Origin: Utricularia gibba
Lineage: Eukaryota; Plantae; Magnoliophyta
Direction of reading: 5' to 3'
DNA: 64,000 bases
Assembly (NCBI GenBank): GCA_002189035.1
Contig: NEEC01000021.1
Span: 1,054,001-1,118,000, forward strand
The stretch's first letter is position 1, and the number at the start of each line of letters is the position of its first letter. The notes beneath the pieces were generated by a model. The model did not search any database and was not told the origin of the DNA. It saw only the letters and a program-made list of their open reading frames with translations. Shown here piece after piece: positions 1 through 64,000 of the stretch. A program made the translations under genes and the position numbers.

Positions 1-529
1 GTTACGGGTAAAATCGTATCCGGTGGGAGGCCGATTTAAGGTGATAGGTGCGATCGGGAATGTCACACTTAGTCGCGTTTTTCACGGCTCGTTCAATTGA
101 AGTAAAAGTGAGTGAAGATTTTTACGTAGAAACCGTCGGAAAGCGGAAAAACCACGGAGATACTGGAGCTTACCGGGAAAGATTTCCACTAGATCAAGAT
201 GGCGAAGAGGGGAATACAAGTTCAAAAATCCTCTTTTTCTTTGTCTCCCTGGCGCTCGTCATAATTCCTTCTAGTTATAGGAGAGGTCACTCTGACCGAA
301 TTCTGATGTCTGCAAATATCGATTGCTTTATGCTTCTGCTATGTGATCTCGCTTTTCAGATATTGGCCGTCTATCATGCCGTAATTCGACCACTTTTTAG
401 ACTGTGTCATGCGGCCGTATTTGTCAGATTTCTGACAGATATCGGTCTGTCGACCGGCATTATCCCCCCAAAGTTTCTTTTGACAGCCTTTTAGATGCCG
501 ATTACGTCTGGCCGATTTATCCCCTATCA
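1..529 (-). repeat. 3' LTR (its terminal T lies just outside the window)
   Basis: Reads gttacgggtaaaatc...atcccctatca. It aligns over its full length to 9503-10031 with roughly 35-40 differences counted by eye. Confidence 0.95.
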
Positions 530-657
530 TTCAGCCCTCTGATTCGCCGATATTGGCCCTTCCGGGATAAGTCGGGGAATCAGAATCACCATAATGCCGA
601 CTTTTGAGGGGCCGCCTTCCACAAATGAGCCACAAACCGCTTTGCACCGATACCTCT

Positions 658-756
658 GCCACGTGTCGGCTCGTAAACATGCCACGTTTTTTCCTGCCCA
701 TCCAGGGTACCTCAAACGTCGTGTCGCTTCGTCTCTCGAATCCTTACATTATAAAT
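658..756 (+). promoter_or_regulatory. Putative internal promoter of the antisense gene (G-box + TATA)
   Basis: GCCACGTGTC at 658-667, GCCACGTT at 681-688 and TATAAAT at 750-756, followed by a pyrimidine-rich leader up to ATG 1035. Confidence 0.5.
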
Positions 757-1034
757 ATCCGCACCCCTTGTCATTTCTCCCCTTTGCTTTCTTCGTTCGC
801 TCGCGAGATTCCAGCGCTCTTTGAACTCCACCGTGCTTGCTGCCGTGTCATCCGCAGGAGATCACAATTTTCCAGGTATCCACTCCTTCTCCGTAACTTT
901 TTGCATCCCTACGGTTGTTTAACTCCCCTTTAGGTCTTCGGGAGTTTTTGACGGGTAGCTACCGCCTTTCTGAGTCGTTTACTCCTAAATTCCGTCTTGT
1001 TCTAGGGTTTGGGGCTTCTTTCGATTTTTCGAAA

Positions 1035-3255
1035 ATGGGTAGGAGATCTAGTGAACTTAACATCCCTCCCTTCACATTCGGTACTCGATTCCTGATGAGT
1101 ATCAACTTTCTCCTGCTCGGGATATCGAAATCCCTTGGGGGATCGTGAGAACCCTTGCCTCCATTCAGTCTTCCGGTCCCGCTCGCCTATTTCGAGAGTG
1201 GTTTACGCTTCCACTCCATCCTTTAATAGTCCGCTTTCTTTACACATTTGCGATTCCGCTTTATTGCCTCGCCCCGAATTCCATATTCTGCTTCACTACC
1301 TTCCTCTTCTATTCGGCCGGTATGGATCCGGTTATGACTCTAATAGACTTTCTCCATCTCTTCAAGGTTGCCGTGCGTAAAGCGAAGTCCCCGATGGATG
1401 GCCGATCTCATTTTCAGTTCCGCCGATTTGAAGATAACCCCACTTTGTTGTTAAGGCCCCCGATACCCACCATGATTGGTGGTCTTCTTTTGTTTGGGTA
1501 GCTCCCCTCTGGGTTCTCGGTGGAACTTCCCAGTCGATCCTCCAACTCCTTTCCGGATCAAAATCTTTGGTGCGTATCGGTCTTCTTCCGAATCTCGTGA
1601 AGTTCTGTATGAGAGGCTTAGTCGAGGCTCAGTTCGGTACGAGTCTCGTGCCTTGATGTTCTCGGGTGAGTCGCTGAAAAGATCAGATATTATCGGTCGT
1701 TCTTGAGACCCCATTGGCCCGATATCATTCCTTTCGACGGTGCCTATTCGAGAAACATTCCTCTTGACCCCCCTCCATCACTTCCTCTTGTTTCGGCTTC
1801 ATCCCGATCCCCCCACCTGTTCAAACGGGGCCCCCAAGAAAAAGAAGAGGGTTAAAGCACTCGCGCACAAACCCTCAAAGTGGTAAAGAGGTAGTTGGGC
1901 TCAGCTTTCCCGAGTTTCAGAATCGGCACTATGCCTTATTGCTTTTCCTACTTTCGTTTTCAGCTGAAGAGATGGCTCGGAGAAACTCCCTGGAAGATTC
2001 GGTGATGGCGCGGTTCTCTACCGAGATGCAGAGGGCCAGGAACCCGAGGTGCCCTCCCCTGCACAGGTCTGTCTTCTATCTAACAGTTACCGTGAATTCC
2101 CGTTTATAATCTTTTTTCGGTTTTTCTTCTAGATTGCTACCTTTGGGGCTCATCCGGATGCCGCCGATCTCTCCTCGGGGGAGGATCAAGTGGTAGAAGT
2201 CTCCGAGACTTAGGAGTTGACTCCTCGTCCTTCAGCCAGAAAAGGGAAAGAGAAACTTCCACCATCACCCAATCTCACCGATGCTCCCATTCCTGATGCG
2301 AGGTTCTTTTCGGCTGATGCTTCGACATCAGCTCCCCCATTCGAGATATAGAGGGATTCTGCCCTTGTGGAAGTAAGGGATAACCCGGTGCCCCCTCCAC
2401 CTTCAGTTCCAGCTGAACTAAGGAGAATCCTGGATGGAGCTATGCCTAGTACCTCGGACGTTCGGCCGGAGACGGTACTTGAAGGGATCTGGCAGGTACG
2501 CATCCCGTTTCCTCTTCTAAATTCTAAGTAGTCGGTTCTTGACTTGGCAATATTCCTTCAGGCTTTAACTCTTGGGTGGAGAGTGGTTAGAGAGATTGGT
2601 TCTCAATCGGAGGCAGTCTCTCGACTTCAAGCCCAGGTTGTGGCTCAGGAGTCCAGATAAAGTTGCTAGAGGAGGAGGGGAGTTCGCTGAAGACCGTTTT
2701 AGGGAAACGCACCCGCCAGGAGGAAGAATTGCGGAATGTGATCGAGGAAATGGGAAAGGCGGTTGACGACGCTAAATCGGAGAGAGAAGGCTTCAAAGTC
2801 CGATTTGAGGAGAAGCGGAGTTAGAGCATTCCAGGGGCCGCATCTTGGCATTAGAGGCCGAATTGCTTGATCAACAAGCATCTCCGCGGGTCTTCTGAAT
2901 GATTTTGTCAACTCGGCCTGTTTCGCCGAACTCTCCGATATCTATGCAGAGACTTAATCGGCTTACTTCTATACCGTCAGAGGCGACAGTTCAGCCGGAA
3001 TTTGGGCTTTCAATCATGGATCTACGCTTCGATAGGGTAAACCCCTTGACGAAGGATGAGAACATGCTTGATGTTATCGCGGATACTTTCCAGGCCCCAG
3101 AGTTCGGGTTCGAAGCTGATCGGGAGCGGCTGATTGCGCTGATTCGGGCGAGGATAGGGCGAGAGAATGATGCCAAGTTGAGAGCCAGGATAGAGCGACA
3201 TACCGGTTCCTCTACCAATCCTCCCGTTAATCCCCCATCTCCCCCTGTACTTTAA
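1035..3255 (+). pseudogene. Antisense extra gene of the retrotransposon: TRP28/Transposase_28-like N-terminus, NLS, C-terminal coiled coil, spliced, degenerate
   Basis: ATG at 1035. Joining frames gives YFESGLRF-PLHPLIVRFL…LAPNSIFCFTTF and HDWWSSFVWV (~1180-1510). PKKKKRV lies at 1833-1853. Candidate GT-AG introns at ~1883/1891-1963, 2067-2132 and 2496-2561. Heptad-like AVSRLQAQVVAQES…RQEEELRNVIEEM after 2562, and stop at 3255. Confidence 0.72.
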
Positions 3256-4046
3256 TAACTTTTTTAACTTGGTGTATTTTTCTCCTCTGCGTGGGGTTTC
3301 TTGAACATTTTTGATATCCCAATTCGGGATTTCTTCTAATTTACTCCATTTTTTGCGCATCATTTCTGCCTTTGATGATATCACATTTCGGGGGGAACCC
3401 CGAGTTGGTTTGTTATGTCTATCACGTGCTTAGACTTGGAAGTTTCGCCTATGCTTTTGTGATCCGGGGGCGGGTATCTCTTCGTCAACCCTTTAGTTGG
3501 GCTTTTTAATTTCCGTTTGCCTTAGTATTTCCTCATGCGAGCTGAACTGCTGCTAAGGAAGTAGGTCGGAACCCCTCATGAGTTGAGCAACTTCCCCAAT
3601 CCGGAAGGGCCCTCTTCTGGCCGAACCCCATTGGGTGGATTTGCTTTGGGTGCTCTTGTCGTCTCGAGATTTCGACAATAAGTTCAATACTTAAGGGCTT
3701 TTCAGGACTTACGCATGCGGTTTACGGGAACCGGTGCCCGAATTATACCAGAGCTTATTCTTGTCACCGACTTATGCCTGGGTTTGGGGGATCACTTGTA
3801 TATATATCGGGGAGATCCCGAGTTGGTTTGCTGTGTCCTGCAGGGGATTTGCCTGGGCTCGCGTTGTTTGGCCAGGGCTTGTGGTTTAAATCTTTTAGGG
3901 TCTGCTTGGGCTTACTCAACTCGGCCAGGGCTTATGGTTTCGTTTACTCATCTCCACTTTGGAGGAATTTACAGGCACTTGAGTGTTTTGAGGAAGAGAA
4001 TACCGAATTCTGCACACTCCTGTGATGGAGATTGACATTGACCCAG

Positions 4047-7000
4047 TTAGGTGTAGAATTTCTTTAGGTGTGATGCATTCCACGACCTTGAGAATTCCAC
4101 GCCGTCTAATTGTTCTAGACGATACGCTCCTTTTCCGATTACCCTTGAAATCCGATAAGGGCCTTCCCACTTGCGATCTAATTTTCCAACATATCTCTCT
4201 GGTTGAATGCTTCGGAGCACCAAATCTCCCTCAGAGAATTCCCTTGGGGACACCGACTTGTTATATCTCTTCTCCGTTCTCCTCTGATGAGCCCCTAGTC
4301 GGCTATAGATGCTTTGCCGTTTTTCTTCCAACAGTTCCAACTCCAGTTTTCACAGGTCAGCATTTTCTTTTTCATTATAATGTTCCACCCGGTAGCTCTT
4401 CAGGGTTAGTTCGATAGGGCATATGGCTTCTGAACCGTAAACCAATAAGAACGGGGATTCTTCTGTGGTGGTCTGAGGGGTGGTGCGATATGACCACAGC
4501 ACTTCATCCAAGTGATCTGCCCATGACCCTCCAAAATCTTCAAGCTTAGTTTTCATTCCTAGCCTGAGCGTTCGATTCGTTACCTCTGTGAGACCATTGC
4601 TCTGCAGGTGATATACCGAGGTGAAGTTTTGCTTGACCATATATTTATCCAGGAATGCCTCCATTCTTCCTCCAACGAATTGGGTTCCATTATCGGTCAC
4701 TAGTTCTTGAGGGAACCCGAACCGGATGAAGATATTTCTCCACAAAAACCGACTCTGATATTTTTGCCACGGCTTCGGCCTCCACCAATTTGGATAAATA
4801 CTCGACTCCCACGATGACAAATTTCCTTTGGCTCGAGGTTTGGGGGAACGCCCTATAATATCCACTCCCCATCGATCGAATGGGCATGAGAATGGAAGAG
4901 AGGTCAGGTTATTTACCGCTTTCTCGATGTACTCGCATGATATTTGCATACTTTGCATTTGTTCACCATTTTGGTAATATCCCGCTCCATAGTTGGCCAA
5001 TAATACCCGGTTCTCAAGGCTTTCCTGCATAAGAATCGTATCCCGACGTGGCTGCCACATTCCCCTTCATGCAGATCGGTTATAAGTTCTTGAGAATGCT
5101 TTGACCCGATACACTTCAAGAGGGGTCCAACTAAGGATCTGCGATAGAGAATTCCATTTACCAGTGTATATCTCTTTGCTCTAATCTCTAACCGTTGGGC
5201 TTCGATTTATCAGATGGTGTTTCTCCATTTCGTAGATACAAGACGTAGGGGGATGTCCAATCATCGAGGTGACTCAGCTGTGGAGAGATATCATTTCCTG
5301 GTTGCTGGGTAATATAATTCACGGCTTGCAAGGTCGCTGAAGGTTGATCCCGCAACCGAATCGTCACACTTCCCTCAGCTCATGAAACCCTGCAGAAAAT
5401 CGGGCGAGGCTATCTACGGATCCGTTCTCCTCGCGCGCTACATGCGACAGGGTGAATTCCTTGAAGGTTTTTGCCAGCTCCTTTACCTGAATATGGTACA
5501 AGCCATGAGGGAGTCATGGGTCTCGTATTCACCCGAAAACTGTCCTTACACAAGTCGTGAATCAGTGTAGACGTCGAGCTCCGCAACTCCTAGTTCCTTG
5601 GCAATTTTCATTCCTTCAATCAAGGCTTCATATTCAGCCACATTGTTGGAGGCTGGGAATAAGAATTTCACGTGATATAAATGTGTTCCCCGTCCTGGGT
5701 TCGGATGTCTATTCCTCCTCCAGCGCCGTTGTATGTCGAACCATCAACGTGCATGCCCATCGGTCACTGGCTTCTTCAAAACGGTCTATAGACCTGGTAA
5801 TTTCGACCACAAAAGCGGCAAGAGGTTGGGCCTTGATTGCTGTTCTCGATTTAATTTCAATATCCATTGTACTGAATTCGACCGCCCATTTGGCAACCCT
5901 TCCGGAAATCTCTGGTCCAGATAGGATATTCTTTAAAGGCTGATTGATGAATACCACGATTTGCCGATCTTGGAAATATGACCTCAGTTTTGTGGCCGCC
6001 ATCTTCAAAGCCAAGATGAATTTTTCTGTCACCGTATACCGGGTTTCGGCCGGTAACAGAACCTTGCTCACATAATACACCGGCAAGTGTTTTTCTGTCG
6101 AGATGGTTGTCAAACTGCGCTGACTGCAACAGGCAATATAGATAGATATAGTCCTAAGGGCTCTCCTGCTTTCGGAGCCACAAGAAGCGGGTGTGATGAG
6201 AGATATTCCTTGAGTTTTTCAAAGGCAGTCCGGCAATCCTCGTTCCATTCTAAAGCGTTTCCCTTTCGCAAGACCTTGAAGAAGGATGCCGACTTATCGG
6301 CTTACCGAGATATGAAGAGGCTGAGAGCAGTCAATTTACCCGTGAGACTCTGGTACTCCTTGATAGTTCTTGGGGGTTGCATTTCGCATATTGCCTTAAT
6401 CTTCTCGAGGTCAGCCTCGATTCCTCTCTCCGATACATAATGCCCCAGGAATTTTCCGCTTCGCACCCCGAAGCAACATTTCAGTGGGTTGAGTTTTAAC
6501 CCGTATGACCGGCACAGAGAGAAACAAGAATCCAAATACGCTAAGTGGTCTTCTTCATGCATAGATTTTATGATCATATCGTCCACATATACCTCCATCG
6601 AGGTACCGATTTCAGAAAAGAATATTTTATTTACTAACCTCTGATAAGTCGCCCCAGCATTCTTTAGACCGAAAAGCATGGCCTCGTAGCAGTAAACCCT
6701 ATCCTTGGTGTAGAAGGTGGTTTTCGGTTGGTCTCTCTCAGCAACGAAAATTTGGAGGTATCCTGAATAGGCATCCATGGTGTTCAGGAATCGGGATCCG
6801 GCAATGGCGTCCACTAGCTTGTCAATCTTTGGCAAAGGATAAGGGTCCCTTTCGCAGCAGGCGTTGAGGTCGGTGAAGTGAATGCACATCCTCCATTTTC
6901 CCCCGGGCTTACCCACTCGGAGTACTGGATCTTCACATAACCAGCTTCCAAGAGCATAACCAGCTTCCAAGAGCTCCCTTGTTTTTTCTTTGATAATTCT

Positions 7001-7927
7001 TTTCCTTTGAGAAATGCCGTTGCTTCTGCTGAACCGGTTTTTGCCCCCGGGTAGGTATCAATGTGATGCTCGGCAACGGATCTATCAATGCCTACAAAGT
7101 CTGTAGCAGTCCAGGAAAAATATCGGCGTTCTTCATCAAAAGTTCAACTAACCTCTTCTCAAATCCGGTGTCCAGATTAGCACCAATGCGGGTTGCTTTC
7201 TGCGTATCTTTTGGTACTAGTTGCACCGACTTGTACCCTACTGGTTCCATTGCTTGTCTGGGGGGTTCTCGGGGTTCCTTTTCTACCATCATCACTCTCG
7301 GCTTTTTCGCGCAGGGGTCTTGGTAGGAAAATACATAACAGGACCGAGCGGTTGGTTGGTCGATGCCCATCGTGCAAATGCCCCTCGAAGTCGGGAATTT
7401 AATTTTCAAATGCACAGTGGAGGGTATCATACTGAATTGGTTGATGCCGGGTCGCCCGAGGATGATGTTGTATGAGATCTCTGAATCTAGATCAAGAATT
7501 CCAACCTCTCGGTTCGGTTCTGCCCTGCCGCTCCGAATGTTACGGGCAAGGTTATTTTCCTGATAGTTTGCACGGCCCGCTGATCGAAGGCATATAACTC
7601 CATTCGCACGTGGCGGATGTTTCCCTCGTTGGATGATGCCAGTAACTCGGCTACTTCCTTCTTCATGATGTTGCAGAAGGATCCTTGATCAATAAGAATC
7701 CTTCTTACCTTGGTGCTCCTGCATATTTTCGATACCACCAAAGGTTCATCTCTTGCAGTTGGGGCGATTGGGACGCCTCGGCCGAAGAAGCTGATCTCTT
7801 CTTTTTCCCAAGCAGTTTTCTCAGTTGGACCATTTCCGATCTTGAAAACTTCTCCTCTTCTGGCTTCATCCAAATATCTCTTCCGCGCTTTTTCGGATAC
7901 ATCCATTTCGGTCCCTCCGGATATCAC
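4047..7927 (-). pseudogene. Retrotransposon pol (protease, RT, RNase H, archaeal-type RNase H, integrase), fragmented
   Basis: Protease RILIDQGS (7487-7927); RT TDLNACC…PYPLPKID…YVDDM (6302-6970); RH PVYYVSKVL…ETRY (5709-6113); aRH SNNVAEYEALIEG…VYTDSRLV (~5380-5760); INT HEGECGSH…CKVC, WGVDIIG, DNGTQF, SNGLTEVTN, WEGPY…WNASHLK (4047-5119). Confidence 0.93.
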
Positions 7928-9424
7928 ATGGATTTCCCGAATGTAGGGGGACTACCTTGCATTTGGTGTGAATTCCGTGAACTTTCTGGTATGTCTTGTC
8001 CTCCTCCGAGATTCGGTTCCCTGCTGGCTCTCGAGTCTTCCTCACTGGTTTTGGGGGGAACTTCGGATATCGGTTACCTTCATTCCCGGTTCGTTCGTTA
8101 CGCCTTCTTTTCCGGTCCGTCATCGATGCGGGGTTTCGTATTGCGTTGCTCATTTCCCGCCAGCATGATATTGCTCGATCATCCTTTTCATTACTCAGCA
8201 GTTTGCAGTATCATGCCCGTTGGTCTTGTGTATTTCGTAGTAGATATATGTTCTGGTTGGTTCCACCTGATATATTTCATGGCGCTTGCTGCGGGCTCGG
8301 CGGGCTCGGACGGATCTCCACGCGGCTTTTCATCTCGGCCCTGAGGTCGTCGTCAACTCGAATGTACTTCATGATTTTCCTTAGCAATTCTCCGAGATTC
8401 TTTTTGGGGACTTTGATAGACTCTGTCCCAATTTCGATGTTCCTAAGGCCCGTTTCATTATTTTCACCCTCTACTTTAAATCCAGCTGGACGTCTTGCGC
8501 TTGACAGCTACATCGGTCGATGAACCTTCTCAAACTCTCTTTTCGGTGGTCATACCGAACAGAGTATAATGCTGCCTTTGAAGGTGGAGCTTCGATGTTG
8601 ACAGCGTATCGAGTAGTGAAAAGCAGCACTAACTCCCGATAATATGCCACGCTGCATGGTTCTAACTGTTTGAACCATGTCTTTGCTCCTTTTTGGAGCG
8701 AGCAAGCGAATAGCTTACACTTCATGGCCTCTGAATGTCAAACCGTGGACATCCTCATATCGAAGTCGGTTACGTGCAATATGAGGTCCCCTTTCCTGTC
8801 ATACGTGGGTAATCTGTTGGGACCCTGAATCCTCTCTCGGGTTCTTCCTCGACTAAATCGTCCGAGAAGGGGTCAAAACGCAGCGTTGTGATCCCAGCTG
8901 CTCCCTCAACCCCACTCTTCAAGGCCAAAGCGATGTCGGCCAGAACGTCCCCAAACCTGGTAGATACGTTCTGATCGAAAACGTCCTTGAAGCCCCTATC
9001 CTCTCTTCTCCCCGTCGATCTCCGCTTGTTGATAAGTCTTCTCCTCTCGCAGATCTGATCTAACTCTCTCTTCAGCTCTCCTTTCCTTTCTTCCAAGATT
9101 TTTCCAGCCATGTTTTCCCTATTAGTTCCTGGCTCATATATGACTTGGTTGCACCTCTTTCTTCGCAGCATCTCCTCCTCGATTTCGGATTCAGTCTCCG
9201 TATCCGGGGGTAATCCAGAATAAGAGGTTGCTTCTCCGTTCGTGGTGCAGTTTTGGGTGTTCCCTCCTGGGCGTTGGAGTTGAACCTGAAGGTGCCCGGA
9301 GGTCGGCGAGGATTTCCGTTAGCAGGGCCTTCAGTTGCTCCCTGCTGGTGATCATAAGGCCGAGGTCTCGAGCGTCGGCGCTTTCGTCCTGAGCCGGGTC
9401 GGTGGCTGTGCTATTTTCCGCCAT
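7866..9424 (-). pseudogene. Retrotransposon gag, fragmented
   Basis: ORF pieces 9191-9424, 8770-9171, 8471-8725 (KLFACSLQKGAKTWFKQLEPCSV…FTTRY, Retrotrans_gag-like) and 7866-8153. Confidence 0.8.
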
Positions 9425-9480
9425 GATCCGTGATTAACGGGTGGCTCCTGTGGGTTTCTCAAGTGGGGCTGTGGAACGTC

Positions 9481-9498
9481 GCCCCACGGTGGGCGCCA
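9481..9498 (-). promoter_or_regulatory. Primer binding site, tRNA-Lys(CUU)
   Basis: The minus strand reads TGGCGCCCACCGTGGGGC 4 nt from the LTR, complementary to the 3' end of plant tRNA-Lys (…GCCCCACGGTGGGCGCCA). Confidence 0.9.
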
Positions 9499-9502
9499 AT
9501 AA

Positions 9503-10031
9503 TGTTACGGGTAAAATCGGTATCCAGTGGGAGGATGATTTAAGGTGATAGGTGCGATCATGAATGTCACACTTAGTCACGTTTTTCACGGCTGGTTCAA
9601 TTGAAGTAAAAGTGAGCGAAGATTTTTACGTGGAAACCGCCGAAAGCGGAAAAACTACGGAGCTACCGGAGCTCACCGGAAAGATTTCCACTAGGTCAAG
9701 ATGGCGAAGAGGGGAATACAAGTTCAAAAATCCTCTTTTTCTTTGTCTCCCTGGCGCTCGTCATAATTCCTTCTAGTTATAGGAGAGCTCACTCTGACCG
9801 AATTCTGATGTCTGCAAATATCGGTTGTTTTCTGCTCCTGCTATGCGATCTTGCTTTTCAGATATTGGCCGTCTGTCATGCCGTAATTCGACCACTTTTC
9901 AGACTGTGCCATGCGGCCATATCTGTCAGATTTCTGACAGATATCGGTCTGTCGATCGGCATTATCCCCCCATAATCTCTTTTGGCAGCCTTTTAGATGC
10001 TGATTACGCCTGGTCGATTTATCCCCTATCA
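9503..10031 (-). repeat. 5' LTR
   Basis: Reads tgttacgggtaaaatc...cccctatca (529 bp), directly followed on the minus strand by the PBS. Confidence 0.95.
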
Positions 10032-12908
10032 TTTATCTATACAAACTATATTTCTATCATATTGGAAATTCATATAAGATTAGTATAATGTACTTTCACT
10101 CTTTATCAATGTAATCAATGAGGTTTATACTACCACCAATTATAGGCATGAGTTTGTATCTTATATAGATAACTTGTTTAAACCAATCAATTTTCTAAAA
10201 AATTTAAAATATAATTAAAAATTATAAATCTCAATTCAACTCATTATATAAAAAAGATCTTCGATTCGATTCTATTAATATCTAATATTTCAAATACTTC
10301 TGTATTTGTATTGGATCGATAATCATTCCACATTCCATATGGCATACTTTTTCAAGAATGCTAATCCTTTGGAGGGCAGTACAACATAAGCCTACTGATT
10401 AATGTTTGAAAAATGTTATGTTTTTTAGTAAACCACCACTTGTTGCCAATTATTGGTCTAGGGTAGTTATGGTAAAGAGGTCTTTGTTGGTAGTTGCAAT
10501 TCATTAAATTTGCTCATACATTATAAGTTTTATTAATTTATTTCATTATTAAAAATAGCTATATTTCAAGATATTTAATATCCCATAAAGAAAATACCAA
10601 ATAAAATATAAAAAATAATATAAAGACTTTTTTTGGTAATTTTACAAAAAAAAAATTTGTAACAAATATAATTGATTTATATTTTTAAAAAATAAAAATT
10701 TAGAAATCATTCTTATTTTTAATAAACTACAAGACCATTGATTCTGATTTTGTTTTGTTTTGATTTTTAAAAATATTTTTCGAATGAAAACCCTTATAAA
10801 TTTATTTTAAAATAAAAATGATATTTATGGGATAATATCATTATTTAAAAACGTTTTTTTTTAAATATAAAATAAGTATCAAACTTCAAGGAGCATAATG
10901 CATCCAAAAGATTCTGACGTGTACTGATGGGCCCACATTTCGGATTTCCAAATCCACGTCATGTCCAGCACTGTTTTTTTAGTTCAAATGGATCTTTCAC
11001 AAGATAATGCATCACAAGGGACACGACAAGCAATGTATGAACACATGGAACAACACTCCCACATAACTTATCTCGTTTGATCACGTGATAATTTTTTTTT
11101 TAAATATCATTCATATTTCTTGTGTATTTCAATTTTAACTACGTCATTAGTAAAATATTCACCTCCCACTAACCATACTACTTTGATCACATTTTAAATG
11201 AAAATAGCTATTAGTTATTAAAAAAGGGCTTTTTAAATCAATAGTGGAATTAGGAATAAATATCAAATAATTAATCACTAATCATAAGTTCAAAGTTCAA
11301 TAATTACACACATTTTCGTTATTGATCAAATGGACAATTATGTCCCTTTCTCCAACTAAATGATCTCAATGTAAATGTTTTGTCTTTATTGTTTGAGAAA
11401 TTGTATGTTTTTGAAACAAGTCCAAACATTTGGATGAATTATTACTATAATACACTTTGTTGAATTAATTTCAAAATTTTTTTGATCATCAAATATTTTT
11501 TTATTTAGTGATAGTAAAAAGAACTAGAAATACTTAAGTTTAAATATAAAATTTATACAGCATGTGATTTATATATTTGTTCAAAGCATTGAAGTAATTT
11601 TTTTAAAAAAATAAATTTGAATATTCATAAATATTAAAAGAAAATGTTACTATCAATACAATAAATGTGTTATTAACATAAGTGGTGTATATATTATATA
11701 TTTCAAAGATATTTTCATTTTTAAATATTTTTTAAATTTATATTATATTATATAATGATTAGATTAATCATTATTCTTGTGCCACTGTTGACTTCATATG
11801 CATTGGAAATATCCAATGATACTATACATTTTGGATACTTAATTATCACGTTATTTTACGTTTTTTTCGAGCAAATTTTGTATACATAATTAATTTCATT
11901 ATACTTGATTCTTTTCATTAATTTGCATGGAGTGTTTAATGAATATAATTTTTATTCATAAAATCCAAAATTAGTTTTTAAAAATTACTATTATAATCTA
12001 GTTTTGTGTACTAGTCATTGTGGGCACTTCTTGTATGTCTTTTCTTTCCCTTTTTTTATTTGAATAAATAATGAATAATAATTCAAATTAAACAAATCCA
12101 ACACATTTATCTAATGCTGTATCTTGGGCATTGACCAAACCCTATGAAGATTTTTCTGTGGATGAATATTTTATTATAAATATTACTAATAATCATCCAA
12201 AAATGTAATGTTTTTCTAATTATAATAATGTGGAATAATATTTTTTTATTATTATTCTTTAGTGACCTTTATTGGTTCGATAAGATTTTTACTGGCATGT
12301 TGCCTTGATAAGCACGTGACCGTATAAGAGAAAATTCAACCCACGTTTTGAACATTTTTATGTTTATGAATCTCATCAATAACACATCAAAATTAGTCAC
12401 TCACAACTCAGGAATAAAAAAAATGCATATCCCAGTTACAAATAATTCGCTTATAAACTATAGTCTAAATCTTAGTCTATAAATTGGTTTGACCGGTCAA
12501 GTCGATTTATGCTTAGAAAATCCATATCTTACATCCTATATTAGTATAAAATGGATTATTTGCGTCATTGATTCTGATTATTGACGTCATTGGTTCCCAT
12601 TATTTTACAATTTAATGTAATTAGTCATCACTGTTTCAAAAGAATATCAAAAATTGATTACAATAATTCAATGATTATCGCTTACATAAATATTTTTGTA
12701 TAAATAATATATTATTTAAAATAATTGATATTAATAGTCCTCAAATTTGGTAAAATTAGTTTCCAAACAAACTGTTAATTATACCCAGTGTTTAAATAGT
12801 AAAAAATAAAATACGTTGAAAATATAAATTTTATAAATTAATTATGTTCAATATGCTAAAATTTTGGAGATCGATTTTGTCATTAGGAATAAACTAAACA
12901 ATTCATGA

Positions 12909-13207
12909 TGAACTAATTTAAGTAAAATGTTAAATTAAGGTTTTTTGACGTATTTTTCTATTATAAATATATTATTAATTGAAAAAAATTCTATCAAAAC
13001 TCGAAAATTAAACATGTGCGTGTAAAACATGTTTGAAATGTGATACATAATTTATGTTAAAAAATCTGAACTAATTTTAGTAAAATGTTAAATATTAAAG
13101 TTTTTGACGTAATTTTTTCATTATAAATATATTATTGGATGGAAAAGAGTCTATGAAAACTCTAAAATTAAGCATGTTCGTGTTAGAATAATTTCGAAAT
13201 GTGATAC
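12909..13207. repeat. Degenerate tandem duplication, ~158-bp period
   Basis: tgaactaattt(a/t)agtaaaatgttaaa…ttataaatatattatt…aaatgtgatac occurs at 12909 and again at 13067. Confidence 0.75.
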
Positions 13208-18053: not shown

Positions 18054-19976
18054 CTAAAGCCCAAGCCTGGCCTTCAGCCAAGAGCCGACCTCGTCCATCA
18101 CCGATGGTACGGTGTAGTGACCCACCCTGCAACCGCCGGCGTGTCAAAACAGGGGATGGAAGCATGATGATGACAAACAAACTCACTCTTGAAACGTTCT
18201 GAAGGTCAGGTTTCTGAAGCCAGAGGAGGAGAGGACTTGGTATGACTTCTCCCCATGCGTGTATGGAACCACTTCATCGCCTGTTGAACTTGGGGTGATC
18301 AGAACCGACCAAAATCGGAGTTTTTACGCAGAATCGTGTTACGAAAACGAGGAAAAGTTGAGAATTGTGATGCGTACAGAGGCCATGAGCGAGCAGGATT
18401 GGTAGATGGGCAGCACGTTGTGTGTAGTCGTGTGATCCCTCCATCTCTATGCTCATGCCCCTGCAGTGTTAGGCACCGAGTTCAGATATCTTGCATGCAA
18501 GTTTCTAATAAGGAGGAGGAGGAGGAGGAGGAGAACCCTGCACTGGGAAGCCAGCCACTTATGGCAACGATGGCTCTGAGGTTAACTTGGTAAGGGCAGC
18601 CATTTCCATGCTTGCCGCGGGCGAAGCAACTCGCGGAATACAATGCTGTGGCGGCACCCATGCTGAATCCTCCGATTCCGAGCTTAACTGCACCATGAGT
18701 ACAGTAAACTCAGGAGTTGTATGGGCATGGAAATTGGCAAGAAAACTTGCGTGATAACTGTTTATCCTAAGATGATGAAGATAGGCAAGGATAGCTAGGT
18801 GTTCATACCATCATGTGGCTCACTAGAGAGCAAATTAGAAATGTATGCAGCCGAGGCATCTAACTCTTCAGAATCCTCAGGAAACTCGTCGGTGAGCTCT
18901 CTGCCATCGAACCCTGGGATGGAGGAGGAGTGAAAATATGTTTGGTGTTGCAAGTATGAGATGTTTTACTTACAAGCAGTGCAAGGAAATCCCCCAAGTA
19001 GTGCAACTGGACGAGTGGGAGCAGTAGGGCATATCCATTTTATCTGCAAATCCAAGTTTTGGTACCACAGCGATATAGATTTCTGCCATACATGATTGTT
19101 ACTTACATTTGGAAGTTGCAGGCTTTCCAGAAGGTGTAGCCAACTGAAGAAGAAAAGAGCAAACCGGCCAACTCAGCAACGTGTACAAAAGACTAAAGCT
19201 GAAAATAACATCACATAGGATATTTTCACGGTACATGGGATTTTGTTGCTTGTTCATCTGGAAAGTGAACACGGATAGCAACAAAAAAAAGGTGTTCCCT
19301 TTAGCATAATTTAGCTGAAGCAATGAGTGATGAACAACACGAAAGCAACTAGGTTACCATTGCTTCAAAAATCATCACCTCGGGAATATTCCTAAAGCTG
19401 AAAATAACATCACATAGGATATTTTCACGGTACATGGGATTTTGTTGCTTGTTCATCTGGAAAGTGAACACGGATAGCAACAAAAAAAAGGTGTTCCCTT
19501 TAGCATATTTTAGCTGAAGCAATGAGTGATGAACAGCACGAAAGCAACTAGGTTACCACTGCTTAAGAAATCATCACCTCGGGAATATTCCTAACTCATG
19601 AACTCGAAAGTTAAAAAGCGTAAAATCCGCATACACTTTATGACGATTTAGAAATATTTGAGTTGATTTTGTTTAGGGATCTGAAATGATCGTTAACAAC
19701 ATTCAAACACACTGCTAAATAGACAAAATGTACCTAGAGCCATTGTCCCCAAGCCCGTGAAGCCAAACGATAGTGGCAAGGTGCTTCCCCTTTGGCTTAA
19801 CAACATATATCCTCCCAAACTCAAATGTTGCTCGGCCTGTTCTGCTCCCTGAGATACGATCAAGCAACACAAGCATATTACACATGAGTCAAGAAAATAG
19901 CTAGAAATGTTATAAGAAGAATCACAAAAAAATTGAAACTCTTCGGATGCTAACCAGAGCCACCAGAATAACTCAT
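18054..19976 (-). CDS. Acyl-protein thioesterase / phospholipase-carboxylesterase (alpha/beta hydrolase), 9 exons, 249 aa, intact
   Basis: Exons 19955-19976, 19734-19848, 19107-19143, 18974-19043, 18809-18913, 18537-18687, 18378-18460, 18187-18280, 18054-18126 sum to 750 bp with consistent phases. Motifs IVWLHGLGDNG, IKWICPTAP, GGFSMGA (Ser), HGLCDEVV (Asp), GHYT (His). Confidence 0.93.
19193..19590. repeat. 199-bp tandem duplication inside thioesterase intron 2
   Basis: Units 19193-19391 and 19392-19590 differ at 5 substitutions by eye, with CTAA microhomology at the junctions. Confidence 0.95.
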
Positions 19977-21211: not shown

Positions 21212-22810
21212 TCATTCATCGCTTTGGCTCGAAAATTCATCCTTACTTCTGGATGATATTCCAGGATCCCTGTAGCATTTCATCACATTTGAGGCCTCTT
21301 GAATACTCTTGGAAGTGCTTTTTTCCATCTTGTCTGCAAGTATATCCGCTTGCTCAGCAAAACCTGATCCTATAAGCTTATTTCTTAACAATTCACAAGT
21401 TGAAGTATATGGTGGAATCCCTTCATCAATCATCATCTCAAAAAACTTACAGGCTAGCTTAAGTTTACTTCTTTTCCTACAGAGTCCATGGACCATGACA
21501 GCATATGTTGAAACAGAGGGGTAAAATCGAAGGTCTTCCATGTTTTTCCAAATTTCTTCAACCATATCGAACCTCCCTATCCGAATTAGCATTTTGAGAA
21601 CCATATTGTAAGTATGCTTATCAGGTTGGCATCCATCTTCTTCCATCCGTGACATTAGCTTAAGAGCCCTGTTAACTTCATTAAGATCACAATGAAGAGC
21701 TAAAATGGTATTGTAGCTCCATGTATCCGGTTTAGAACCACTCTTGATCATGTCAGACAGAAGCTCATAAGCCTCATCCGTCTTCTGCTTCCTACACAGT
21801 GTCTTGAGGATCCGATTATAGGTAAAAACATTCGGAATAAGATTGTATCTTTCCATTGAATCTAGGACTCTAAATGCTGAATGAAGATCATTGGCATCAC
21901 AATAAGCGTGAATGAAGATCGAATAGGAGTAGGCATCAGGTTCAAAGGCCTTGTTCCTAAGTTCTCGAAACAACTTATACGCTTCATCAACATTCCCTCC
22001 CCTGCACAACGCGTTCATCAAACTATTCAAAGCCAACAAATCAACATCCAATCCTTTCTCAAGCATTTCATCAAACAGTTGCTGCGCATTACTAGATTCG
22101 CCTATGTCACCCCAACCGCGGATCAGGATACTGTAGGTTTTTATACTCGGGCACAACTCACTGCCCTTAACCCTGTCAAAGAGCTCCTGAGCATCCTTAA
22201 CGTGTTTCTTCTTACACAAGGCAAACAAAAGCTGATCAAGGTCATCTAGACATGGTGGAATCCCAAAGTCCACCATCTTGTTATATGCCCTAATTGCATC
22301 ACCAGGCATATTAGCCCTACTGTAAATCCTAAACACAACCCAGAAAATATCCCTCGTAACTTCACAAGATTCACTCTTTTTCATCTCCATCAAAAAATCC
22401 CATAAGATAGCAAACTGCCCACTTCTTCCTAGTACATCTAACACAATGCGATAGCTCTCTTCGCTGTGTCGAAAACCGGGGATTCCCTGAGCCCATACGA
22501 AGAACCTATGAGCTGCAAACCCAAGATTACTGCATCTCTTCAGTACCTGTTCAACAACGTCAACCGAAATTTTCGAAACAAATGGCAAAAGCGCTGATTC
22601 AATGTCGTGATGGGCACTCCTGTAGTCACTGAGAACCCGTGACAACTCATTGACAACATCAGAAACAGGCGCAATGCAATTTGATTCTAGAGAACGGTAC
22701 GGAATCGAGAGAGACAGGACGCCACCGGCGACAATTGACTTGCGCGCCATCCAGTGACTTCCAGGTCGACGAAGAAGCGAATGGAGCAATCCAATCGCCA
22801 TTTTCGCCAT
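21212..22810 (-). CDS. P-class pentatricopeptide repeat protein, likely mitochondrial (At1g52640-like)
   Basis: Single-exon 532-aa ORF with tandem 35-aa repeats (TYSILIRGW, ALNSLMNALC, SYSIFIHAYC, TYNRILKTLC, TYAVMVHGLC) and an Arg/Ser-rich N-terminus. Confidence 0.95.
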   Translation of the reverse strand: MAKMAIGLLHSLLRRPGSHWMARKSIVAGGVLSLSIPYRSLESNCIAPVSDVVNELSRVLSDYRSAHHDIESALLPFVSKISVDVVEQVLKRCSNLGFAAHRFFVWAQGIPGFRHSEESYRIVLDVLGRSGQFAILWDFLMEMKKSESCEVTRDIFWVVFRIYSRANMPGDAIRAYNKMVDFGIPPCLDDLDQLLFALCKKKHVKDAQELFDRVKGSELCPSIKTYSILIRGWGDIGESSNAQQLFDEMLEKGLDVDLLALNSLMNALCRGGNVDEAYKLFRELRNKAFEPDAYSYSIFIHAYCDANDLHSAFRVLDSMERYNLIPNVFTYNRILKTLCRKQKTDEAYELLSDMIKSGSKPDTWSYNTILALHCDLNEVNRALKLMSRMEEDGCQPDKHTYNMVLKMLIRIGRFDMVEEIWKNMEDLRFYPSVSTYAVMVHGLCRKRSKLKLACKFFEMMIDEGIPPYTSTCELLRNKLIGSGFAEQADILADKMEKSTSKSIQEASNVMKCYRDPGISSRSKDEFSSQSDE

Positions 22811-52230: not shown

Positions 52231-54086
52231 GGGGTGAACCCAATTCCGGTGGTTGGAAATTGAAGTGCAGAGAAAGAAGGAACTCCAATCCACTCTCACT
52301 CAGAGTAGTCACGGAATTCCGAACGAGCTCCTCGGGAAGACGACAGAATGGCTGCAGTTCAGTGGCGCGTGCGTGCGTACGTTACATATAAACAATCAGC
52401 GCACAGAAAGAAAGAAAGAGAAAGAGAGAGCCGGCTAGCGAGACCGAGAGAAAGGAGCTGACTCACCCGACCCGCTCTTCAAAAGTGGACATTTTTGTCC
52501 TCGTTGGATTTTACGCCTTTGCCCCTGCTTTACCTTCATACACACAACAATCATCCATGCTTGTGTCTGCCCCATTGTCATATTTAGGTAGAGTTCTAAC
52601 TGATTTGAATCGGAACTGCGAACTGAAATCGTATTTCAATTTTGATTCAAAATTGTAAACTTTTTTTAGATTCCGGTTCTACAACCGTAAATTATAATGA
52701 AAAAAATGTTTTTAAGTATTCACAAAAACTATTGTGAATGATCGTAAATATATTTTAAAAAATATTGAATTGAAAAATCAACCAAATATATCGCATCTTA
52801 TTCTTAGTTTTTATTAATAAATTTCGTAATATATATTTAAATCCCGCAACCAAATACAATCTTAAGGTACGTTTGGTTTCAAATGAAATTTGATCTAATT
52901 GGTATTGTGAAAATAAATAGTATTTTTGCATGATATTTCAAGGAAGTATTGGATCACTATATTCATGATAATTCAAATTGTCAATAAACATTACATTTGA
53001 TATAATTGTAGAAATCAAAATAAATGTGCTAGGAGTTGTAATGCTTGGTGACATCATGAATATAAAATTGAAAAATCCAATAAAATATGGAAGATTTGAT
53101 ATAAGATATGAGAATCAATATTTTAAAATCATAGGATGGACCTAGGGTTTGACCTGGTTCAATTTGATTCTATGATTTTTTGGGTTTGGAATCAATACTT
53201 TTTATAAAAAATTAAAAATTCTAAAATTTTAAAATATTACATATGGATAATTATTTTATTTTTATAATATATTTATAATAAGTTCAACTCAATTCAATTC
53301 ATTATCAAAAGAGTTTAACCTAAAATCAAGCATATTCCGAATGATAAAGTGAAATCATTTTTAAAACACTGATGAAAATGCACTAATAAAATTTAGAAAT
53401 ACAACATTTAGATAATTATTTTATTTTTATAATGAGTTTGACTTGGGTAGGCCAATTTGCGCGCAATTTGTGCCGCAAAAATGCTCCTCAAATTTGATCA
53501 CAATTCAAATGATGCCCGTACCGCTGGCAAATGATAAGATAAAAAAACCATTTGATTAAAAAAAAAAGAAAAAATCAACTAGAATGTGATTCCGAGGGGT
53601 GGTGCAATGCACTGTGCAGCATCAGATTTCATTCTCTGGATTGGTCCTGGGCCGGAGAGCGAGGCTCAATCACGGATTCCGATGCATGGACTCAAGTCCA
53701 GTTACAGAATGGGCCCTCCTGAAGATATGCCCTACGGGACCCACACTACGTCTGACGCGACACGCGGCTTCATTTATGGATACGCCAGGTGTCAGTGGTT
53801 AAAGGGCCCACACACGTGACTTGGGTCAGGGAGTTACGGGTCGGGTCGGGTTGGCTCGTACCATTTGTGGACAATGGATACTTGAGTTGTGGTTTCTGAA
53901 TTGAGCAAATTAATTATTAATTAATTATGCGAAAATGTGATTTTCCGTGGCCTAAAATTTTCCTTTGTAGGCATGAAGCTGGCTGCGAGAGCCAGTTGCT
54001 GCCACTCGTCTCTTGGTTGGCCACGGCTGGAGAAGTGGTAGGTGGGTCTCGTCCGTGAAGAGGGAAGGGGCTTGGTAGTGTCGCCA

Positions 54087-55261
54087 ATGGCTTCCGCGGT
54101 GATCAACGGAATTGCTTGGACCCCGAGAGGGCTGGGGTCAGATCTCAACGGCAGGAGTTTTCCCAAGCTCAATTCGGCGAAGATTCCGGCCGTATCTGGT
54201 GCTGGGAGACGAGCCCATATCGCAAAATGCAGCCTTTCTGCCTCGAGACCCGCGTCGCAGCCCAGATTCATACAGCACAAGAAGGAGGCTTTTTGGTTTT
54301 ACAGGTTTCTTTCGATTGTGTATGACCATGTGATAAACCCTGGGCATTGGACTGAGGATATGAGGGATGACGCTTTGGAACCGGCTGATTTGGATAGCAG
54401 TAAGCTTATCGTTGTGGATGTGGGTGGAGGAACAGGGTTCACTACTCTTGGGATTGTTAAGCATGTAGATGCTAAGAACGTCACCATTCTGGATCAGTCT
54501 CCTCACCAGCTTGCCAAGGCTAAGGCCAAGGAGCCGTTGAAGGAATGCAAGATGATTTTGGGGGATGCTGAGGACCTCCCTTTTCCAACCGATTCTGTCG
54601 ACAGATACGTCTCTGCTGGCAGGTACTGCATATGCATGCAAGTGTTGCTGCATTTTTTCTTTGAAATCAGTTGAATAATCAATATTTGTATGGTTTTCTC
54701 TGGGTTCATTCATCCTACAGTATCGAGTACTGGCCAGACCCACAGCGCGGAATTAGAGAAGCGTACAGGGTTCTAAGATTGGGAGGGAAAGCTTGCCTCA
54801 TTGGCCCTGTGTATCCAACTTTCTGGTTGTCTCGTTTTTTTGCTGATGCTTGGATGCTTTTCCCCAAGGAAGAAGAGTACATTGAATGGTTCACCAAGGC
54901 AGGATTCAAGGATGTGAAGATTAAGCGGATTGGCCCCAAATGGTATAGAGGCGTCCGCCGCCACGGGCTCATCATGGGGTGCTCTGTCACCGGAATCAAA
55001 CCTGCATCCGGCGACTCACCATTGCAGGTAGTTAGTTAGTTTCCCATCCTTGAGGTCTGTTTATTTCATGCTGTGATTGGTAACATATTTGCTCTTGTGC
55101 TGCAGCTTGGCCCCAAGGCAGAAGATGTCTCTGAACCTGTGAACCCCTTCGTCTTCCTCGGCCGGTTCATTCTCGGCGCCTTGGCTGCTACTTACTACGT
55201 TCTGGTTCCAATTTACATGTGGATTAAGGATCAGATTTTCCCCAAAGGACAACCAATATGA
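54087..55261 (+). CDS. VTE3: MPBQ/MSBQ methyltransferase (tocopherol/plastoquinone synthesis), plastid-targeted, 3 exons, 332 aa
   Basis: Exons 54087-54622, 54721-55027, 55106-55261 sum to 999 bp. Motifs RFIQHKKEAFWFYRFLSIVYDH, VVDVGGGTGF, SIEYWPDPQRGI, and C-terminal anchor YYVLVPIYMWIKDQI. Confidence 0.97.

Positions 55262-55915: not shown

Positions 55916-64000
<8,085 letters not shown>

Follow-up and report, generated by a model that had tools for sequence, protein, structure and literature searches.

A 64,000-nucleotide stretch of the Utricularia gibba genome (assembly GCA_002189035.1, contig NEEC01000021.1, positions 1,054,001 to 1,118,000 of the forward strand; hereafter the window) begins with a dead copy of a Ty3/gypsy long terminal repeat (LTR) retrotransposon of the Tat/Retand lineage, which carries an accessory gene on the strand opposite gag-pol. 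This gene belongs to an already known type, the Retand antisense gene that combines a Transposase_28 (TRP28) domain with a coiled coil, and the best overall explanation of its structure is that it was most likely split by three short introns lying antisense to the genomic RNA. Somewhat more cautiously, we lean towards the view that the antisense TRP28 gene is an intron-containing RNA polymerase II gene across the lineage, that the separate antisense open reading frames (ORFs) published to date are its exons, and that its introns are kept through retrotransposition.

The element occupies positions 1–10031 of the window on the minus strand. Direct repeats at 1–531 and 9504–10033 are 92.9% identical over 532 aligned columns, window position 1 lies within the 3′ LTR, one base in from its outer end, and GC content drops from about 0.50 within the element to 0.23 directly outside it; the flank beyond the 5′ LTR reads ATAAA. 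Between LTRs bounded by TG and CA, the domain order gag, reverse transcriptase (RT), RNase H (RH) and integrase is that of Ty3/gypsy. Two RVT_3 matches (5549–5743 and 5367–5513), both exceeding the gathering score, mark an additional RNase H between RH and integrase, an arrangement that Neumann et al. 2019 assign to two Tat subclades of angiosperms, Ogre and Retand (PMC6317226). Only about 70 nt separate the primer binding site from the start of gag-frame sequence, leaving no space for an ORF before gag, so the element is not an Ogre; its extra gene is located after pol on the opposite strand, which is the Retand pattern and unlike Ogre. Layout and domain order are those of the Tat/Retand lineage of Ty3/gypsy. 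The Pfam scan of the element returned no protease and, after the integrase, an SH3-like domain only and no chromodomain.

This copy is no longer functional. Its pol is broken into many stop-to-stop pieces in differing frames, one of the lesions being a 19-nt perfect tandem duplication (2.1 copies) at 6936–6974 within RT; fragmentation, duplication and an LTR divergence of 7% mark the copy as old and dead. No further copies of the element are present within the 64-kb window, and the region between pol and the 3′ LTR holds no tandem-repeat array.

The antisense gene lies, as an initial annotation of this DNA had proposed, between the integrase end of pol (at about 4050) and the 3′ LTR, and it reads on the plus strand, all gag-pol Pfam domains being on the minus strand. 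The pol-to-3′ LTR region measures 3.5 kb and falls inside the Retand range of 2,933–6,566 bp given by Vicient 2025 (PMC11963269). From an ATG at 1035, reading-frame pieces extend over about 2.2 kb to a double TAA at 3253, where a poly(A)-like signal (AATAAC at 3254) and a T-rich tail follow. The longest open piece, 1061–1498, carries the Transposase_28 match, and its nearest clusters in the ESM Atlas are hypothetical proteins of Streptophyta, one of them with PF04195, at a score of 0.95; AlphaFold run on this piece without an alignment gave a predicted local distance difference test score (pLDDT) of 44, too low to use. Piece 2663–2821 is predicted to form a single uninterrupted helix of 51 residues (mean pLDDT 91.6), in keeping with the coiled coil read there originally and with the Smc-like matches reported for Retand antisense ORFs.

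Such genes have ample precedent, and the initial annotation was right that Retand/Tat elements carry antisense TRP28 ORFs (PMC11963269, PMC7264820, PMC6317226). Grande, RIRE2, Retand and PvRetro13 are all known to have antisense ORFs in the interval from pol to the 3′ LTR (PMC7264820). Among Retand elements, 23% carried Transposase_28 in the survey of Neumann et al. 2019 (PMC6317226); Vicient 2025 detected antisense TRP28 ORFs, often together with Smc-like ORFs, in 97% of the Retand clusters with recent activity and predicted that TRP28 binds DNA (PMC11963269). The elements of that survey (122 clusters) and Silene latifolia Retand-2 likewise have the extra RNase H between RH and integrase, a lengthy stretch between pol and the 3′ LTR, and an antisense Transposase_28 ORF often followed by Smc-like coiled-coil ORFs; the LTR and internal sizes of the window element are within the published ranges, and the hosts are likewise flowering plants, Lamiales included (PMC11963269). 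In contrast to the window element, the published ones are described with separate ORFs and no mention of introns; the window copy is dead, its TRP28 match is below threshold and it lacks the tandem-repeat array.

Three intervals in the gene (Table) carry the marks of short introns. Their T content is 37%, 48% and 38% for introns 1, 2 and 3 (GC 0.44, 0.35 and 0.42), compared with 17–24% T and a GC of 0.52–0.61 in exons 2–4. A segmentation of 1790–3255 by composition only, ignoring GT and AG, placed the top three T-rich islands at 2068–2144, 1930–1960 and 2508–2573, which match the three putative introns within about a dozen bases. Translated, the intervals give hydrophobic runs, as opposed to the acidic, proline-rich flanks. 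An intron filter (G/GT donor, the slash marking the exon boundary; T of at least 36%; a pyrimidine tract; a YAG acceptor; length 55–160 nt), which was defined after the sites were known and whose figures are therefore indicative only, picked out four candidates in plus-strand sequence (two donors each for introns 1 and 2) and none in minus-strand sequence; 300 dinucleotide shuffles averaged 0.27 candidates, and 3 of them reached four. The canonical introns originally proposed keep their G/GT and YAG ends in all three cases, but intron 3 fails the pyrimidine-tract requirement of the filter; the exon between introns 2 and 3 has exactly the 363 nt first reported and is open except for its two TAG codons. 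Judged by composition and splice signals in this single broken copy, the three intervals are probably real introns.

On the genomic RNA, the pyrimidine tract of intron 2 (2067–2132) becomes a long purine run that resembles an internal polypurine tract; the run may be a mere side effect of an antisense intron.

One distant relative was recovered, a 9,247-bp IMG/VR contig (IMGVR_UViG_3300021324_000032, here L002) that was assembled as a circle with a 53-bp terminal overlap. L002, which the collection lists among viruses, is an LTR retrotransposon of the plant Tat/Retand type. Its RT shares 49% identity with that of the window element, and the two agree in layout and in the additional RNase H. 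Its antisense strand carries TATAAATA, also the candidate TATA box of the window gene, about 90 nt before the ATG, and an antisense TRP28 gene that passes the Pfam cut-off (30.7 bits, E 3.8e-7) and contains in-frame stops. Exactly one T-rich island is present, where the TRP28 ORF ends and before a second ORF begins; the 118-nt interval there starts with G/GT 6 nt before the stop of the first ORF, contains a pyrimidine tract, and on removal joins the two frames. Downstream follow a linker, a piece with weak coiled-coil Pfam matches and a C-terminal part, with no further T-rich islands. L002 and the window gene thus share an architecture, with one intron-like interval in a comparable place; as evidence for introns this is ambiguous.

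Several observations weigh against a spliced TRP28 gene. The intervals measure 81, 66 and 66 nt, all multiples of 3, so a single frame runs through 1476–2657 spliced or unspliced and frame continuity is uninformative; such lengths are a 1-in-27 coincidence for real introns and are expected of an unspliced frame. Removing the intervals is not needed to restore the frame (introns remain compatible with this in a decayed copy), and each interval contains one in-frame stop, two of the three belonging to the GTAA donor or the TAG acceptor. Joined to exon 1, exon 2 meets TGA 1965 at once in the frame of exons 1, 3 and 4, and the frame opened by ATG 1972 cannot join exon 3. The pyrimidine tract of intron 3 is weak. 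The 118-nt interval of L002 ends in CG rather than AG, its second ORF opens with an ATG of its own in a favourable context, and nothing in L002 corresponds to introns 2 and 3. The TRP28-like domain first reported is suggested by the PF04195 match and the Atlas neighbours, but the match of 1061–1498 (E 0.0074, 16.9 bits) is below the gathering score of 26.2 bits; and our searches yielded no protein relative for any exon.

A less likely possibility is that the Retand accessory region is unspliced and consists of separate antisense ORFs or one long frame, its T-rich stretches (purine-rich tracts on the genomic RNA) serving as inter-ORF spacers or low-complexity coding sequence. Besides the preserved frame and the interval of L002 that lacks an AG acceptor, it would account for the fact that ATG 1972 and the ATG of the second L002 ORF both stand directly after a T-rich stretch in an ATGGC context; nucleotide similarity around these ATGs is, however, not significant between the window and L002. 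Surveys list 104 antisense ORFs in 63 clusters without mention of introns, and the word 'intron' is absent from both Vicient 2025 (PMC11963269) and Vicient and Casacuberta 2020 (PMC7264820), although the latter review urges attention to 'antisense and spliced transcripts'. Our literature search found no account of introns in antisense TRP28 genes, with the proviso that a mention in Kejnovsky 2006, Steinbauerova 2011 or Gomez-Orte 2013 cannot be excluded. Against an unspliced gene, G/GT and YAG edge exactly the three T-rich islands, and the other strand offers no candidates and shuffles rarely do; the hydrophobic runs encoded by the intervals differ from the acidic, proline-rich flanks; and a second ORF on one mRNA would be poorly translated in a plant.

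The searches for relatives took the exon pieces one at a time. BLASTP of all window pieces against all L002 pieces gave no significant match, and local DNA alignment of the two antisense regions did not rise above shuffles; a ATGGCTCGGA motif common to both regions was dropped as evidence on the same ground. Beyond TRP28 the two genes show no detectable similarity at the level of protein or DNA. Positions 1438–1462 match L002 6976–7000 at 21 of 25 nt (PHFVVKAPD versus PRFVVKAPG), in different parts of the two genes and not above shuffled controls. A word search of protein databases with 1061–1498 and 2899–3252 found no match; full-length relatives would exceed the lengths admitted for pieces this short. 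Full HMMER searching of 1.84 billion representatives with 1061–1498 had a sole match, a repeat protein that matched a short motif seven times and was rejected as spurious. The Atlas search with the C-terminal piece found nothing above 0.79; metagenome scans with the TRP28 and integrase pieces yielded one unrelated contig and no relative; and RT, integrase and the L002 ORF, run against viral contigs and prokaryote genomes, returned L002 alone.

The decay of the gene raises a further alternative. The pieces had been thought to reassemble into one gene, and they do not do so cleanly: at least four frame changes are required (near 1060, 1465–1500, 2655 and 2822), five in-frame stops lie on the reading path (1704, 1965, 2211, 2349 and 2896), and the present copy of the gene is unable to make protein. 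One could accordingly read a real TRP28 ORF followed, beyond about 1900, by neutral remains in which GT/AG pairs occur by chance, as the many stops and frame changes, the lack of detectable relatives for exons 2–4 and the choice of splice sites by eye would allow. This we consider unlikely: the frame 1476–2657 has only 5 stops across about 320 exon codons, exon 4 encodes a confidently predicted 51-residue helix and ends in a defined double stop before the T-rich tail, the domains of L002 follow one another as they do here (linker, coiled-coil-like piece, C-terminal part), and shuffles seldom yield such intron candidates.

A single capture of a host gene or of another transposon piece, by transduction or nested insertion, would suit a gene with its own promoter and intron-like structure but is very improbable, given that position, strand and TRP28 content follow the Retand rule (97% of clusters, PMC11963269), that the distant relative L002 has the same arrangement, and that no insertion boundaries were seen. 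The original phrase 'host-like gene' goes too far: the accessory gene is proper to the lineage and was not captured from a host.

Only introns in the sense orientation of a genomic transcript are removed before reverse transcription; introns on the opposite strand are copied intact, and the initial annotation's inference that antisense introns persist is sound on this ground. If the gene is spliced, as we favour, a TATA promoter of its own would drive its transcription, antisense to the genomic RNA, and three short U-rich GT-AG introns would interrupt it; being on the wrong strand for recognition in the genomic RNA, these would be copied through reverse transcription and passed to every new copy. 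The protein would comprise a TRP28 N-terminal domain, a basic cluster of the nuclear-import type, a disordered acidic and proline-rich linker, a coiled-coil-like helix and a C-terminal tail. Judged by analogy to Grande GENE23 and to the DNA binding predicted for TRP28, this protein may assist or regulate the cycle of its own element as a DNA-binding factor in the nucleus. The more specific suggestion of an anti-silencing or chromatin factor finds no support beyond the basic cluster and this analogy (Grande GENE23 is reported to be nuclear, and TRP28 is predicted to bind DNA).

A spliced antisense gene in a retroelement is not without parallel: HBZ of human T-cell leukaemia virus type 1 (HTLV-1) is a spliced antisense retroviral gene near the 3′ end, with its own antisense promoter, and encodes a nuclear accessory protein. 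The HTLV antisense promoter is located in the 3′ LTR (PMC7264820). HBZ differs from the window gene in having no homology to it, an animal host and a promoter in the LTR; the candidate promoter in the window is internal to the LTR. Ogre, a member of the same Tat clade, demonstrates that functional introns can reside in plant LTR retrotransposons. In contrast to the putative introns of the window, which would be antisense, the Ogre intron lies in sense orientation, sits between protease and RT, and is removed from a fraction of the genomic transcripts only; the extra ORF of Ogre, with a plant mobile domain, lies upstream of gag (PMC6317226), whereas the extra gene of the window is downstream of pol and antisense.

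Maize Grande gene23 and the antisense ORFs of rice RIRE2 likewise occupy the region from pol to the 3′ LTR (PMC7264820), a likeness of layout. Grande gene23 is reported to have its own promoter and a nuclear product (PMC7264820), whereas for the window gene a TATA box and a basic cluster are known from sequence alone. Retrotransposition indicator cassettes, which are engineered tools, exploit the same orientation principle; the cassette of PMC12786077 has its intron in the sense of the element and opposed to that of the reporter, the mirror of the window case.

Were the introns real, current maps of Retand would under-describe the accessory gene, several 'antisense ORFs' being exons of one protein; this would change the choice of protein to be expressed and localised for learning the role of TRP28, and would provide a natural example of introns inherited via reverse transcription. 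If they hold lineage-wide, the gene would be a plant equivalent of HBZ and other retroviral genes that are antisense and spliced. The present copy, being dead, adds little on its own.

Table. Coordinates in the window of the retrotransposon, its antisense gene and the putative introns (a slash marks an exon–intron boundary).
Feature	Position	Strand	Remarks
3′ LTR	1..529	-	TG start at 529-528 in element orientation; from LTR pair alignment, ends read
TATA box	750..757	+	TATAAATA; candidate promoter of the antisense gene, from pattern scan; function presumed
Possible intron in 5′ untranslated region, 130 nt	876..1005	+	CAG/GT ... TTCTAG/G; 39% T; putative, from its signals
Exon 1	1035..1882	+	TRP28-like N-terminal region and basic cluster; from translations
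PF04195 (Transposase_28) match	1202..1369	+	Profile positions 11-67 of 69
Basic cluster PKKKKRVK	1833..1856	+	Shortly before first donor; resembles a nuclear localisation signal by the classical monopartite pattern
Putative intron 1, 81 nt	1883..1963	+	G/GTAAAG ... TTTTCAG/; alternative donor 1891; passes intron filter
Exon 2, 103 nt	1964..2066	+	TGA 1965 in frame of exons 1 and 3; ATG 1972 in another frame
Putative intron 2, 66 nt	2067..2132	+	CAG/GT ... TTCTAG/; passes intron filter; strongest of the three
Exon 3, 363 nt	2133..2495	+	Acidic, proline-rich linker; TAG 2211 and 2349
Putative intron 3, 66 nt	2496..2561	+	CAG/GTACGC ... CCTTCAG/; fails pyrimidine-tract filter; weakest of the three
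Exon 4	2562..3258	+	Helical coiled-coil-like part about 2600-2895; C-terminal part 2899-3252; double TAA
Decayed gag-pol	4050..9430	-	Pfam domains, all on minus strand
SH3-like C-terminal domain	4050-4349	-	Pfam
Integrase zinc finger and core	4353-5206	-	Pfam
Extra RNase H, RVT_3 type	5367-5743	-	Pfam; between RH and integrase
RNase H (RH)	5712-6301	-	Pfam
RT	6305-7057	-	Pfam
gag	8474-8737	-	Pfam
Primer binding site	9480..9497	-	Begins TGGCGCCC; 2 nt inside 5′ LTR; read directly
5′ LTR	9503..10031	-	TG ... CA; AT-rich host DNA follows

Beyond the element, the window consists in part of recognisable host DNA. Near the element are two AT-rich 90-nt repeats lying 160 nt apart (12934–13183) and a 199-bp tandem duplication whose copies are 97% alike (19193–19590). 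An intronless pentatricopeptide repeat (PPR) gene at 21212–22810 on the minus strand encodes 532 aa and is an orthologue of At1g52640, its best matches being Lamiales proteins from many families at 66–70% identity. The identical protein is absent from the database searched; the gene points to an asterid host, probably in Lamiales or close to it, whose proteins are probably missing from the collections, and this would account for the lack of close relatives of the element's proteins. A methyltransferase-like ORF lies at 54042–54674 on the plus strand, and a large host gene with several long ORFs, encoding a BEACH-domain protein (DUF4704, PH_BEACH, BEACH and WD40), occupies 55916–63532 on the minus strand.

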